From positions 186,001 to 250,000 of IMG/VR virus record IMGVR_UViG_3300028920_000022: DNA of 64,000 nucleotides; one strand, given 5' to 3'. The notes beneath the pieces were generated by a model, which worked only from the letters and a program-made list of their open reading frames with translations, was not told the origin of the DNA and made no database searches. Within the stretch, counting starts at the first letter, position 1. The number at the start of each line of letters is the position of its first letter. A program made the translations under genes and the position numbers. Shown piece by piece: positions 47,565-63,500 of the stretch.

Positions 47565-50063
47565 ATGTCCAAAACTCGCGATGAAGAACTTATTGCCATT
47601 GCGCAACAGTACGGTTTGTCAGGATATATGAGGCAATGGCTCACCCCGGGAGGTTGGGGTAGAGGAATTAGCGAAGCATTATTCGGCTCTTATGAACAAA
47701 AAATGACAACCCTCCGCGAAGCGGACACTGCCATGCGTAATGCGGTCATGGGCAAAGGTGAAAAGCGATTGGAGCCGTTGGCGGGATTACAGTTGTCTTT
47801 AAAGCGAGCCGAACAGAGCTTCAAAAAGAACCGTTTCATTGATGTTGCTCATTGGATTGGAAATATCAATGTAATGGTTCGGGAAGCCATTGACTTAGGC
47901 GCTCCTGTTGCAAACCTGACGCAACAGGAGTTGGACGAATATTATTCTGAAACCCAGGTACCATATTTGTCTGAAAAGTATTTTGATGAATCAAAAGTTG
48001 CTGAGGCAGGGTTCTGGGACTTAATGGGTGGAATTTATCGTGGGGTTTTTGGAGACCCGATTGAGCGAGCTTATTGGCGTGAAGTTAAATTGCGCAAAAG
48101 TGCTATTGAAAATTTGCTAAGAACTACCAAGAGTTTTGTATCTCGGGTTTTAGTTATTTTCAATGAGATGAAACGAGCTAGGGCTACTGGTCGTATTAGT
48201 GATTGGACAAACCAATATAATCAATTATTAAAATACCACGCTAGTTTTGAGGAAACATTTAAAGCCGTTTATACTAAACATATAATTCCCATTGTTGAGA
48301 TTGCAAAACAGAGATTTAAGGAACATGAGCGAGCGCAAAACATGCGCGAGCGTCAGCAGCAAAAACAGGTGGATACCGAAGCTGAAAAACAGAGGGCAGC
48401 GGAAAGTGTAGTTGGGCAGCCAGCAGGAACCCCGTCTCAAACTCCAGCACCTGCTACGCCACAACTTAGAAGTACGCCTTATGAATTTGAAACGCCCCAA
48501 GAAGAGCAAGGGGAAACCAATAAACCGGTTGGGCGCCCACCTAAGACAGTTTGGTGGGTTGATTCTAGTGGTGAAGAGGTAGATCCAGCCAATGCGCGGG
48601 AGGTTTTGAACAAGGTCAACGAAGAAACTGCAGGACAAGCGCCAGCAGAAAACAAGGAGGTTAGGGATGAGCATGGTCCGATTGCTATTATCAACTCTGA
48701 GGGTGAAGTTACTTTAGAAGATATTTATGATGCTCAAACGAAACGTAGAGTAACTATCCCTATTGCGGCAGTCAGACAATATTTGGCAAAATTAAGGCAA
48801 GATGAGCTGCGGCAAGTTACCCAAGAACCTGCACCAGCGCAGGAACCAGCGGAAAACAAAGATCTGGTGGTAATATTGTTGGCACGCGCCCTGGGTAAAT
48901 CTAAAAAGAGTGAATTTGTTAAAAATATGCAATCTACGTATAATGCTGATGTAGAGTTTGTTACTCCTAGTAAAGTAAAGTCGGCACGTAAGATTATATT
49001 ACAACATATGGAAGCTGGGCGTAATATTGTTTCTGTGTGGGCGTATGATCCAGAGACAGATAAAATCGTTCAATTGACTGGTGAACTCGATACTCCAGCA
49101 GAGGTCAAGGATCGAGTACCTAATACGTCACCATTTTCCAGTGTATCAGAACCAAAATCAGAACCAAAATCAGAACCTGTTTCTGAACCAGATAAAGAGA
49201 CAGTTCCGTTATCATCGGAGGAACCCGAAGAACCCGAAGAACCCGAAGAACCCGAAGAACCCGAAGAACCCGAAGAACCCGAAGAACCCGAAGAACCCGA
49301 AGAACCCGAAGAACCCGAAAAGGGTGAAAGGTTAGCTATTTTAGGGTTTAAACAAATACCGTCTAACTTAAAACAAATATTAGACACTTTTGGAAGGATG
49401 CTGGGAGTACGCGCTGTAGCTGTTTCACTGGGTCCTGAGGGTAAAGAGAAGGTAGAAGAATATATTCAAGAGGGATATAATATAGATGTTAACCACAGTA
49501 AGGTGTATGATAATGTGGAAGAACTAATGGATGAGTATCCATTATTGGCGTTGGGTTTGCCGGAAGAAGACGAGGAGGAAGAAACAGAAGAGGAAGATCA
49601 AGAATCAATTCCCGCAGAATTTGCAACTAAAACCCCAGAACCAGAACCAGAACCAGAACCAGAACCAGAACCAGAACCAGAACCAGAACCAGAACCAGAA
49701 CCAGAACCAGAACCAGAACCAGTTGCTCAAGAACCCAAGGAAGAACCCAAGGAAGAACCCAAGGAAGAATCGAAAAAACGAATTTTAGTATTCTATCGTG
49801 GTAATAGCGATGATCGTTTGAATGTTCTAAAAGCGGTAGAAAACATGTACCCAGGAACTCAGGTTAATGTGTTGAGTCCACGGGACAGGAAATATAAAGA
49901 ACAATATGCGGATCAGTTAGAAAAGGTTTTCGTTTATCATGTGCCGCCGGAAGAAGGGGAAGAGGAATTGACGGACAAGATGGTAGCCAAATCGTTAAGA
50001 AAAAAGAAGGAGAAAGCTGCAGCTAACCGACGCATAGCTTTGTTAAGAAGGATTTTAGGTTAA
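47565..50063 (+). CDS. large virion-region protein with Glu-Pro tandem repeats
   Basis: AGGAGG SD; 832 aa; EP-rich spacers between short alpha/beta modules. Confidence 0.65.
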   Translation: MSKTRDEELIAIAQQYGLSGYMRQWLTPGGWGRGISEALFGSYEQKMTTLREADTAMRNAVMGKGEKRLEPLAGLQLSLKRAEQSFKKNRFIDVAHWIGNINVMVREAIDLGAPVANLTQQELDEYYSETQVPYLSEKYFDESKVAEAGFWDLMGGIYRGVFGDPIERAYWREVKLRKSAIENLLRTTKSFVSRVLVIFNEMKRARATGRISDWTNQYNQLLKYHASFEETFKAVYTKHIIPIVEIAKQRFKEHERAQNMRERQQQKQVDTEAEKQRAAESVVGQPAGTPSQTPAPATPQLRSTPYEFETPQEEQGETNKPVGRPPKTVWWVDSSGEEVDPANAREVLNKVNEETAGQAPAENKEVRDEHGPIAIINSEGEVTLEDIYDAQTKRRVTIPIAAVRQYLAKLRQDELRQVTQEPAPAQEPAENKDLVVILLARALGKSKKSEFVKNMQSTYNADVEFVTPSKVKSARKIILQHMEAGRNIVSVWAYDPETDKIVQLTGELDTPAEVKDRVPNTSPFSSVSEPKSEPKSEPVSEPDKETVPLSSEEPEEPEEPEEPEEPEEPEEPEEPEEPEEPEEPEKGERLAILGFKQIPSNLKQILDTFGRMLGVRAVAVSLGPEGKEKVEEYIQEGYNIDVNHSKVYDNVEELMDEYPLLALGLPEEDEEEETEEEDQESIPAEFATKTPEPEPEPEPEPEPEPEPEPEPEPEPEPEPVAQEPKEEPKEEPKEESKKRILVFYRGNSDDRLNVLKAVENMYPGTQVNVLSPRDRKYKEQYADQLEKVFVYHVPPEEGEEELTDKMVAKSLRKKKEKAAANRRIALLRRILG
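49221..49319 (+). repeat. tandem repeat (GAACCCGAA)x11 encoding EPE
   Basis: Counted directly; perfect copies. Confidence 0.95.
49635..49718 (+). repeat. tandem repeat (CCAGAA)x14 encoding PE
   Basis: Counted directly; followed by three EPKE units at about 49731-49766. Confidence 0.95.
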
Positions 50064-60582: not shown

Positions 60583-63500
60583 TGATTTCTAAGCACATTG
60601 GTTTTAGAGATAGCGAAGTAATGCGTGAGCTTGAAAGACAAGAGCTTAAAAAAGCCGCAATGCCCGAGAAGGGTGAGAAAATCGCATTTTTAGGTTTTAA
60701 ACAAATCCCTTCAAACCTGCGTTCTATTTTGGAAACCTTCGAAAGAATGTTGGGAATTAAAGCCGTTCCAATTTCTTTAGGACCAGAAGGTAAGGAAAAG
60801 GTAGAGCAGTATGTCCAAGAAGGATATAACATCGACAAGCAACACAGCAAGGTTTATGATGATGTTGAGGAACTGCTGCAGGAATATCCTTTATTGGCGT
60901 TCGGTCTTCCTGATGAAGAAGATGAGGAAGAAGATGATTATGGACCTACCGAAAACGTTGCTGATGATGTTATGACTTTAGCCAGGGGGTTGAGAAACAA
61001 GGGGTTTACCAAAGAAGCTACGGATTTGGAAGATAAATTCCTTCTTTATAAGACTGCGGAAACTCATCTTTATAGAGTATTTGATGAGGACGGGGAAGAC
61101 TTAATTGATTTTTCTCATCAGGATGGTGATATAGAGGTGGCTCCTGCCAAGGAAGGGTATGGTAAGGTAGAGACGATTGTTAGTCAGCACAAGAAGATCG
61201 AAGATGTTGTTAACAAGAAGCCAACCGGCAAATTAGGAGGACACCCAGCCGGGGCTAAGAAAAGTGGCGAAGTAAAAAAAACTGCTAGAGAGTATACAGG
61301 TCCTCAACCTGATGTTCCTAAACCTACGGTTAAGTTACCATCTTCTTCTGAAATTAATTCTCAAGAACAATTAAAACAGGAATGGAACTTTTTATATAAT
61401 ACTCAAAAACGTCTGTTAAATCTTATTATTGGTGACGAGGATGCGGGTGGTCGTGGGGATTGGGGTATAAAATTTGGGTCTGGTAAGCGCACCCGGGCGC
61501 GAGGATCTGTTAATGAATTTTGGGTTGAAGCTGAGGCTCCAGGTCTTTTTACTCCAAATAATGTTGTTACTTTATTTACAGAAACTTATGATCGCGCGTA
61601 TATTCCCGAAAGAATAAAAAACACCCCATATGAAGGTTTGTTAAAATTTTATTTGAAAAAATCTGGACAAGAAGTTTCATTTAATAAATTGTACGATGGA
61701 GTTTTTGAGAAATTGCAAGTTAAAGCGTCTCCTGGCAGTTTTTATGTAATATTTAATGAATCGCAAATAGCTGCTATTAATAAAGGACTTATAACGCATG
61801 TTAACAATGTAGTTAAAGATATCAAATCTATAGATTATGGTTCTGTTCCGAATTTGGGGAACCGAGAAGAAATGCAGGCATCTGTGTCTACATTAGAAAC
61901 AGCACTTGCTACATTACAGAATATTATGCAATCTGGAATGGATCGACAAGTACAAACTCTTATTTTATCTAAATTAGATGATAATACAGGGAACCGTATT
62001 GATCAATACAAATATGAACAAGATAATCCTAATACGGCCAACCGTATTGTTCATGCATATAATGATTTACAAACAAATGTTCGTAGATTGTCTGATCATA
62101 TTGAGAACTTGTTGAAAAAACCAACGGTGCAAGTAGCAGTAGGACCAGCTGAAGTTGACATGCCAATGGCTAAAACTGTTGGTAATGTCTGGACTACACC
62201 ATCCACCAAATTAGCGTTGGTTGGTAGCTCTATGCCGAACAATCGTGGTCAGTGGTTGGCAAAACAGTTTGAACAATTGGCGGTTTTAGCCAGCAATAGT
62301 AAGAAATGGAAACAAGGGGCTCCTATATTCAAACAAGCTGCAGTTTTTTGTCGCCAGTATGTTAATCAAAACCCAAAACATACATTATGGAACTTGTTAG
62401 TTAATTTATCGAAAAACCCAAGTTTTAAATCATATTTTAGTGGTTGGGAAGTAAAAATTAAAAACCTTGAACAGTTGCGTAATATATTCACCAATGTTTT
62501 GCCAGCTAAAATTAAATCAGCTAGCGTCAAATCAGTAGTAAAAACAGCCGGAATAGAAGATCCTGACTTCGTTCCCCCAGGAGCTACTCCAACTCCTAAA
62601 AAACCAACAGCAAAACCAGGAAACCGACTGGTTCCCAAGAATAGACAAAAAGCTCAGTATGCTCGATATCAGGCGGCTATTGATAAATATCACGATGCAC
62701 ACCCTGAGGCAGCTGATGCTGTTATTATAATGCAAAACCAATTGAATATGATTGCTAGTAAGCTTGGTGAAATCGCTAAGCAAACTAACAAGATTACGCA
62801 AGAGGAGGTGGCATCGGCGGTAATTAAGTTATTAAGTACAGGTTTGAAGGGCGGAAGATCTGCTCAAGATTCGCTCGATGGATTATGGGCTACTTCTACT
62901 AACACAGCTTTAGAAGCTTTACAAAACATAATTGATAAACTTTATCCAGACGATAATATTAAATTAAATAATAATATTAACTATAAATCTGCTAAGGATG
63001 CTGATATTGTGCAGGCAGCTCAGTCCAACAGTAGTATCATTGAAGACATTATTAAGAAAAAGTTTAAAGAAGATTTTGATGTAACGGTTCCAAATACACC
63101 CGACGAGCTAAAAGAAGAATCAACAACCAACCAACCAACCAACCAAATAAGACAAGGCGTTTGGGATCAATTAAACTATGCACGTATGCGTGCTGGCGGA
63201 GCTTGGACTGATATCTCAGAAAACCCTGATGTTTTTGTTCGTGATGATACATTTAATACATTAGATAAATTTGCAAACTTCTTAGAAAGCTATAGGTTGG
63301 CTTCTAGAAAAATGACCGGAGAACTTTGGGATAAATGGTTGGGCTGGTTTGCTATGCGAGCAAATTGGCTTAGAGATCATAACCAAGACACATCCAAAGG
63401 AAAGTACTTAACAGCGGTGCAGACTTTAAGATCTAAATTGCGTAAAGCTATTAGTAAATTAGGTGATAAAGCTGCTAATAATGCATTTTCTCCAGAAGAT

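Follow-up and report, generated by a model that had tools for sequence, protein, structure and literature searches.

Gene content of the head-gene block

The window, a stretch of 64,000 nucleotides, comes from a marine-sediment phage that is represented by metagenome sequences only and has a genome of 458,729 bp; coordinates given here are those of the window, and every feature lies on the plus strand. The large terminase subunit (43839..45656; PF05876, E 4e-16; phrog_675, E 1.7e-61) is followed by the portal protein (45672..47522; phrog_16240, E 1.6e-56), and the open reading frame directly 3' of the portal gene (47565..50063) translates into P0003, a protein of 832 amino acids (a.a.). P0004, of 1130 a.a., is encoded by a further open reading frame of the head-gene block (60582..63974). 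No alternative genetic code was required. The P0003 and P0004 genes are flanked by the terminase and portal genes on one side and by the major capsid protein gene on the other, and they belong to a single same-strand block that includes, between the two, the gene for an 1135-a.a. protein (53873..57280) with a prohead-protease-like domain at approximately a.a. 87–231 (phrog_18299, E 1.6e-12; phrog_2774, E 1.6e-15). The protease region of this protein matches no Pfam family.

Neither P0003 nor P0004 matches a Pfam family (E ≤ 0.01) or a PHROG family. P0003 consists of (i) a conserved helical N-terminal domain (a.a. 1–270); (ii) small domains carried on Pro/Glu-rich linkers; and (iii) a basic C-terminal helix. 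The best-conserved part of P0004 is its N-terminal 236 a.a., not counting the module described below.

A module shared by two otherwise unrelated proteins

Two segments of 82 a.a., one in each protein, align without gaps at 63 identical residues. Copy A (49317..49562) corresponds to a.a. 585–666 of P0003, as placed by translation and BLASTP, and copy B (60666..60911) to a.a. 29–110 of P0004, as placed by translation and BLASTP. When the whole proteins are compared by BLASTP, the match extends over P0003 a.a. 574–666 and P0004 a.a. 18–110 with 66/93 identities (E 6e-39), and all remaining segment pairs have E-values of at least 3. The shared part therefore makes up only 10% of P0003 and 7% of P0004, and a plain paralogue pair, with homology running through the rest of both proteins, is ruled out. 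The preliminary description of this DNA, which had proposed an 82-a.a. module common to two large and otherwise unrelated proteins, is borne out on this point, as it is on the surroundings of the copies: both are followed by an acidic run (at 49563..49604, a.a. 667–680, in the case of copy A), copy A has Glu/Pro repeats on both sides, and a KKAAM motif (a.a. 23–27) lies upstream of copy B. An acidic run comes after every one of the four module copies known from any genome. The linkers around copy A contain a perfect 9-bp tandem repeat of 11.0 copies (49221..49319; 100% matches), which encodes the Glu-Glu-Pro linker on the 5' side, and a perfect 6-bp tandem repeat of 14.7 copies (49635..49722), which encodes the Pro-Glu linker on the 3' side.

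Protein and profile searches that covered the 458,729-bp genome in its six frames found exactly two copies of the module. When all open reading frames of the genome were compared with one another, no pair of otherwise unrelated proteins except A/B gave a true local match. At 76.5%, this pair also has the highest identity of any paralogous match, the runner-up standing at 58.5%.

Distribution and predicted structure of the module

The module is known from three lineages, namely this phage and two related ones (G004 and G001). No copy was found outside this phage clade by tblastn against 50,697 phage records, by scanning contigs from IMG/VR and the JGI metagenomes for sequence patterns, or by a word-index protein search. 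When 1.84 billion representatives were searched with HMMER, the only returns were another assembly of this phage and two highly repetitive proteins; the lack of further matches falls short of proving absence elsewhere, because this search missed P0003 orthologues that other tools did find. Related fragments occur in several marine-sediment and salt-marsh metagenome runs. The two repetitive proteins were set aside as spurious, as each matches a part of the profile of 27–29 residues 7–10 times. A word search with the whole of P0003 returned nothing, and the Glu/Pro repeats are suspected of having swamped the word list. The module is an orphan domain, belonging to no described family.

AlphaFold2 predicts the module as a compact beta-alpha-beta-alpha-beta-alpha domain, with a core pLDDT of 81–87 and four of five models in agreement. 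Foldseek comparison of this model with the PDB and BFVD gave no match at E ≤ 0.001, a fold search with VIA-align reached a best Z of 4.5 (no chain attained Z 5), and matches in the ESM Atlas had TM-scores of 0.39–0.44. The chains recovered are receiver domains, the anticodon-binding domains of HisRS and ThrRS, and halves of periplasmic binding proteins; judged from the predicted model, these matches show a generic three-layer alpha/beta arrangement only, without a specific relative. At the sequence level, the Pfam family PrpR_N matches both copies weakly (E 0.06–0.19). With the module profile as query, solved structures yielded one marginal match, 6mel_B (E 0.004 over 48 residues), which was taken as chance.

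P0003 also carries a C-terminal alpha/beta domain (a.a. 736–800), which was considered as a diverged copy of the module; this idea found no support, the probability dropping to 4% with more sequences included. Earlier comparisons of this region had given an hhalign E of 8e-4 at 24% probability and, in the sister protein, an hmmsearch E of 0.013.

Origin of the P0004 copy

Both full-length P0003 orthologues that were found (G004, 789 a.a., 59% identity; G001, 60% identity) carry the module in the same position, and there, as in this phage, it is set between extended linkers rich in Pro and Glu. The four P0004 orthologues (G004, G001, G002, and G003) keep the sequences that flank copy B, and in place of the module they have a linker of 8–17 a.a. 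The comparison of orthologues that the preliminary description had called for thus gives the module in 2/2 P0003 and 0/4 P0004 proteins. As both P0003 orthologues keep the module in place and the P0004 orthologues are without it, this distribution indicates that P0003 is its native home.

The segment present only in this phage's P0004 (60660..60938, approximately a.a. 27–119, with borders placed to about 3 residues) consists of the module with a Pro-Glu dipeptide before it and the acidic run after it, and it occupies a short variable loop between the N-terminal helix of P0004 and its conserved N-terminal domain. In a tree of the four module sequences, in which R and R2 are the copies of the two P0003 orthologues, 10 informative sites support the grouping (A,B)|(R,R2) and one site supports each of the other two groupings, on a sample of four short sequences from three module-bearing lineages. 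The pairwise identities are 76.5% for A-B, 57% for A-R, 54% for A-R2, 52% for B-R, and 54% for B-R2. The grouping of A with B, together with the module-free P0004 orthologues, shows that copy B entered P0004 on the branch of this phage itself. One module copy, with the last Pro-Glu of the linker before it and the acidic run after it, was inserted in frame into the P0004 loop, from a P0003 donor in the same genome or a very close relative, at some time later than the split from the sister lineages.

The alternative, that the module was ancestral in P0004 and was then deleted from the other lineages, appears very improbable. A stretch of nine residues in the linker of a sister orthologue can be loosely aligned to the module's central part, and it could be either a remnant or a chance likeness. 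However, ancestral presence needs losses in four lineages, and copy B would not be expected to group with copy A after an ancient duplication unless gene conversion had intervened. Ongoing conversion between the copies, like an assembly artefact affecting one of them, is hardly credible in turn. The high protein identity is the only observation in its favour, whereas saturation has been reached at synonymous sites and the exact runs common to A and B extend to 11 nt at most, which leaves no substrate for conversion or for confusion of an assembler. An artefact is moreover ruled out by the assemblies: a single 94.8-kb contig covers the region with zero differences, the second assembly has an identical P0004 N-terminus, and a contig from another study joins the start of P0004 to the module, that is, across the left junction.

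The two copies are 69.5% identical at the nucleotide level. Of their 75 differences, 50 fall on third codon positions, and different codons specify 37 of the 63 residues that are identical. Expressed as proportions, synonymous differences reach 0.875 and non-synonymous differences 0.15; the former value is saturated, as synonymous sites are in all comparisons, those of orthologues included, and dS is beyond estimate. Timing consequently rests on dN and the shape of the tree. A variant of copy B was recovered from an independent marine-sediment metagenome, and 13 of the 14 listed differences are synonymous, the other being a conservative Val-to-Ile exchange. These substitution patterns show purifying selection on both copies, and since such selection has lasted, the copy is useful in P0004. 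Taken with the tree, they indicate a copying event that is lineage-specific yet old. The preliminary description had spoken of a recently shuffled domain; shuffling between unrelated proteins of the head block stands, but its recency does not, given the nucleotide identity and the synonymous saturation. Its further suggestion, that the domain moved by recombination at low-complexity flanks, holds in part. The inserted segment does start in the donor's last Pro-Glu unit and end in the acidic run. On the other hand, the recipient site is without low-complexity sequence, and the perfect repeats seen today are young, the 9-bp array being a product of slippage; the linkers of the P0003 orthologues are unlike those of this phage.

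Possible roles of the module

On balance, the reading that we consider moderately probable is that an old copy of a P0003 domain, placed into P0004 and kept there by selection, would act as a protein-binding unit in head assembly. As a putative docking unit, the module may bring P0004 to the partner that P0003 binds, or to the place that P0003 occupies, in the assembling head. A stronger form of this proposal, in which the domain and its acidic tail are a transferable folded docking unit, akin in structured form to the T4 capsid targeting sequence, whose copying sufficed to recruit P0004 to the same prohead site, is rather doubtful; if true, nature would have carried out a 'tag swap' here, and the domain might provide a cargo-loading handle for huge-phage capsids. 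Prediction of a complex between copies A and B, run without controls, gave a score of 0.01 (mark 0.34), which weighs on neither side of the question.

The preliminary description had suggested a docking or packaging tag for internal head proteins. A special case of docking along these lines would be a capsid-targeting propeptide, a folded and lengthier equivalent of the T4 capsid targeting sequence: it would carry both proteins into the prohead, where the prohead protease would then remove it. Both genes do lie in the head block, with a prohead-protease-like domain encoded between them, and the helix, module and acidic run together take up the first ~120 residues of P0004, which is near the size of the SPN3US propeptides. 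We nevertheless regard a propeptide as unlikely, for the module is internal in its native host (a.a. 585–666 of 832) and not N-terminal, inspection by eye of the alignment of the four copies reveals no conserved cleavage motif at the module borders, and the P0004 orthologues do without the module. It is distinctly unlikely that, in place of a docking unit, the module is a small alpha/beta domain for ligand binding or regulation, whether Rossmann-like, receiver-like or similar to an anticodon-binding domain, even though the generic Rossmann-like and receiver-like matches would suit such a role too. The fold matches are all to domains of this kind (best Z 4.5), PrpR_N is weakly matched from both copies, and the most conserved residues would, on the model, sit in the loops that follow the strands, for instance from Glu-Gly-Tyr-Asn-Ile-Asp to His-Ser. 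Yet none of the fold matches rises above background, the domain is very small, and it has neither a glycine-rich nucleotide loop nor the acidic pocket of receivers.

Under the preferred reading, an old domain copy serving as a protein-binding unit, the orphan domain gains a testable hypothesis, namely a common head-assembly partner for P0003 and P0004. The case is a clean yet fairly ordinary one of domain shuffling, and another example of a well-known process. Its value is that a domain was transferred within a head block and that its donor, its recipient, the place of insertion and the timing in relative terms can all be read, with both copies demonstrably maintained by selection. As a natural experiment, the pair is well suited to studying how huge phages extend their head proteins with new parts.

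Comparison with known systems

The MuF/SPP1 gp7 proteins (PF04233) are encoded directly 3' of the portal gene and combine an N-terminal domain that is conserved with C-terminal extensions that vary (PMC5576092). P0003 is alike in that its gene is immediately 3' of the portal gene on the same strand, and in that its N-terminal domain is conserved, enough to be recognised in the distant G002 as well, and is followed by a variable extension. PF04233 matched no part of P0003 at E ≤ 10 and nothing genome-wide at E ≤ 1, Atlas and PDB sequence searches with P0003 for MuF kinship returned nothing, and the AlphaFold2 model of a.a. 1–285 (mean pLDDT 51) was too poor for fold comparison. Assignment of P0003 to MuF/gp7 was accordingly rejected for want of a profile match, and the likeness is one of position and layout only.

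The module also resembles phiKZ_IP (PF12699) in being a sequence common to proteins whose genes lie within or close to a very large phage's head module. PF12699 did not match P0003 or P0004 at E ≤ 0.01, and the phiKZ_IP inner head proteins are paralogues over their whole length, whereas here only 7–10% of each protein is common. [quoted passage not shown] Like the T4 targeting sequence and the propeptides of SPN3US and phiKZ, the module is an element common to several head-associated proteins, an association that is drawn here from gene position. Unlike the T4 sequence, it is a folded domain of 82 a.a. by prediction, and it is close to the N-terminus only in P0004.

A further parallel is the domain mosaicism of phage proteins, which is defined by Smug et al. 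(2023; PMC10684548) as the presence of a homologous fragment in two otherwise unrelated phage proteins. Copies A and B are a pair of this kind. Compared with the mosaicism described there, the present pair lies in a head-assembly block, has both copies in one genome, allows the direction of transfer to be read, and involves an undescribed family.

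A domain common to two head-block proteins

P0003, the 832-aa protein encoded directly after the portal gene (window 47565–50063, + strand), and P0004, an 1130-aa protein of the same head-gene block (window 60582–63974, + strand), have an 82-aa module in common. Copy A in P0003 (aa 585–666; window 49317–49562, + strand) and copy B in P0004 (aa 29–110; window 60666–60911, + strand) translate to the first and second 82-aa stretches quoted in the preliminary description, and their aligned translations bear out its count of 63/82 identical residues with zero gaps. BLASTP of full-length P0003 against P0004 returned a sole significant segment (aa 574–666 against 18–110; 66/93 identities, E 6e-39), all remaining segments having E values of at least 3; thus, the resemblance is confined to this segment and far exceeds chance expectation, and the hosts are otherwise unrelated, as had been proposed. 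The surroundings are also as first described: an acidic run directly after the module in both copies, Glu/Pro repeats on both sides of copy A, and a KKAAM motif preceding copy B close to the P0004 N-terminus.

Protein and profile searches of all six frames found exactly two copies in the 458,729-bp genome. An all-against-all comparison of its 733 ORFs gave 249 paralogous pairs, nearly all whole-protein and many of them tandem arrays of 80–100-aa proteins. Only two are local (a match spanning <30% of both proteins), namely an overlap of the record ends and the module, which is the most similar paralogous match genome-wide (76.5%; runner-up 58.5%). The genome is rich in paralogue families (G000 ~37.5–48 kb, 366.7–373.4 kb, and 385.8–387.2 kb), and its paralogues include a tandem pair of ~850-aa proteins, 43% identical, with a 307-aa relative.

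Genomic context

The genome (G+C 39.5%), of which the window covers bases 186001–250000, is rated complete by CheckV, and its opening 126 bases (G000 1–126) are repeated at 458594–458719, 10 bases short of the end, consistent with a complete genome that is circular or has terminal redundancy despite the IMG/VR label "linear." The P0003 and P0004 genes share one same-strand head-assembly block. It begins with the large terminase subunit (window 43839–45656; PF05876 at 4e-16, phrog_675 at 1.7e-61), which is at most 25.6% identical to that of any deposited phage, and the portal (window 45672–47522; phrog_16240 at 1.6e-56). Several small ORFs separate P0003 from a PTP/DSP-type (dual-specificity) phosphatase (window 51813–53036; PF22784 at 2.5e-8), which stands at mid-block and is conserved in the sister lineage; the protein after it (within window 51813–53739) matches Imm30 only below the cut-off (3.3e-5). 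Downstream is a 1135-aa protein that contains a prohead-protease-like domain (window 53873–57280; phrog_18299 at 1.6e-12), and the major capsid protein lies ~2.7 kb past the window (phrog_2522 at 1e-78). Neither P0003 nor P0004 matched a Pfam or PHROG family. A free-standing LAGLIDADG homing endonuclease (window 58786–59547; PF03161 at 1e-25) is encoded ~1 kb upstream of P0004, but the sister lineage has this gene at the same place without copy B, so the endonuclease is not tied to the insertion.

Other head-block genes also differ between the two lineages. The sister orthologue of the protease-domain protein (L004:12038–16093, in a sister-lineage sequence) has 1351 aa and carries Hint/intein-splicing domains at ~aa 124–277, within the protease-like region; hence the sister gene has an intein that this phage is without. 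The sister portal product (L004:2546–5596) is 1016 aa long, compared with 616 aa in this phage, and its aa 616–672 weakly match LAGLIDADG_3; this essential head gene may therefore have received a further intein or an endonuclease. At window 51210–51816, two overlapping ORFs (97 and 109 aa) match one 267-aa sister protein at aa 1–96 (N-terminal, 78%) and aa 161–267 (C-terminal, 79%). The DUF5661 domain that forms the middle of that protein is absent from this phage, whose gene is in two pieces, making this the second case in the head block of a domain present in one lineage and absent from the other.

Distribution, native host, and insertion site

Judged by its sequence, the module is an orphan. 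It was not matched in 50,697 phage records; a word search returned P0005 alone, the version of P0004 in another assembly of this phage; and a HMMER scan across 1.84 billion representatives yielded just two further matches, both spurious repeat proteins. That scan omitted the P0003 orthologues of the related lineages G004 and G001 despite module-profile E-values of 1e-40 to 1e-51, so absence from the representative library is not proof of clade-wide absence. P0004 minus the module, used as query, retrieved P0008, a 999-aa orthologue (33–34% identity) on a syntenic contig, through which four related lineages were reached: G004 (the sister lineage, present in several samples), G001, G002, and G003. 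When IMG/VR and JGI metagenome contigs were pattern-scanned with module profiles built from three and four sequences, the module turned up only in this phage, G004, and G001.

These comparisons point clearly to P0003 as the module's home protein. In the P0003 orthologues of G004 (789 aa, 59% identity) and G001 (60%) the module occupies the equivalent place, with an acidic run after it and, on either side, linkers rich in Pro, Glu, and Lys whose sequences differ. A distant P0003-like protein in G002 is without the module and has only the helical N-terminal domain in common. In the P0004 orthologues of all four lineages, the N-terminal helix is kept, as is the highly conserved domain after it, and a linker of only 8–17 aa joins the two; at the same site, P0004 has ~93 extra residues, made up of a Pro-Glu dipeptide followed by the module and its acidic run. 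The P0003 linkers on either side of copy A are exact tandem repeats (9 bp × 11.0 and 6 bp × 14.7, 100% matching) and are therefore young and fast-changing. In all, four in-frame, 100% matching arrays encode P0003 linkers, with periods of 12, 9, 6, and 12 bp at window 49145–49177, 49221–49319, 49635–49722, and 49729–49769, respectively, and their copy numbers likely vary between strains.

Origin, age, and maintenance of copy B

When the four module sequences are compared, A is placed with B by 10 parsimony-informative sites, and each of the two alternatives is supported by one (identities: A-B 76.5%, A-G004 57%, A-G001 54%, B-G004 52%, B-G001 54%). Given this grouping and the missing module in four P0004 orthologues, the origin of copy B lies on the branch leading to this phage, and the sequences indicate that P0003 was the donor, either in this genome or in that of a very close relative. 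The domain had been described as recently shuffled; the shuffling stands but the recency does not, with A and B only 69.5% identical in nucleotides and synonymous differences saturated (proportion 0.875, vs. 0.15 non-synonymous). Differences number 19, 6, and 50 at the three codon positions, and 37/63 identical residues use different codons. The longest identical run is 11 bases, so the copies are no longer able to recombine with or convert each other. As the A-B non-synonymous distance (0.167) is about half of that between orthologous copies (0.309), copying would fall very roughly midway since the sister-lineage split.

An assembly artefact is excluded for copy B. A 94.8-kb contig of the probable source run covers window 59800–62300 with zero differences, a separate ENA assembly encodes an identical P0004 N-terminus including the module, and a 343-base contig from a different marine-sediment study covers 60553–60895 at 94.5% identity, beginning ahead of the P0004 start codon, crossing the N-terminal helix, and reaching into the module. 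The 14 listed differences of this last contig comprise 13 synonymous changes and one Val-to-Ile substitution. The inserted copy is under purifying selection, at the population level too. In the second assembly of the phage (ENA, a 314,935-bp contig), P0004 is split into ORFs of 854 and 262 aa and departs from this record after aa 853 (window ~63135–63145); the split is either genuine variation or the result of a frameshift error in one of the assemblies.

Predicted fold and proposed role

AlphaFold2, using a two-copy alignment, predicts a compact domain (core pLDDT 81–87, 4/5 models in agreement) with the order strand-helix-strand-helix-strand-helix and a disordered acidic tail; the module is acidic even with the tail left out (pI ~4.8–4.9). 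The module is thus predicted to be a real small folded domain. Foldseek found no module match at E ≤ 0.001 in PDB or BFVD, an exhaustive VIA-align search peaked at Z 4.5 (zero chains at Z 5), and ESM Atlas TM-scores were 0.39–0.44. Matches belong to the general three-layer alpha/beta class only: receiver domains, HisRS/ThrRS anticodon-binding domains, periplasmic binding protein halves, and designed Rossmann folds. The modeled fold would accordingly give nothing specific on function.

One head-block protein was the source of an independently folding domain with an acidic tail that was copied into a loop of a second, and both proteins have conserved it for a long time. In the simplest reading, the module would be a binding unit giving P0004 the partner or location of P0003 in head assembly, since it would be held bead-on-string between extended linkers in P0003, the P0004 orthologues presumably function without it, and copy B has nevertheless been retained by selection. 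A capsid-targeting tag cut off by the protease, a narrower form of the docking or packaging tag first suggested, seems unlikely: the N-terminal placement in P0004 and the 124–127-residue propeptides of giant phage SPN3US (PMC5694885) are compatible with such a tag, but the internal position in the native host fits it poorly. The module may instead have a ligand-binding role, with which its predicted fold is compatible.

Comparison with known systems

The module lies outside the class of T4 capsid targeting sequences, being of the wrong size and position, and with no Pfam match it does not join the phiKZ_IP family. In layout and in the position of its gene, P0003 is similar to the MuF/gp7 proteins (PMC5576092); a MuF domain was undetectable in P0003 and in the rest of the genome. 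By the definition of Smug et al. (PMC10684548), the module pair counts as domain mosaicism in phage proteins, and it is unusual in three respects only: the site is in the head block, both copies are in one genome with a readable direction, and the domain is undescribed. Its value is that of a clean natural experiment, with a testable hypothesis for an orphan domain.
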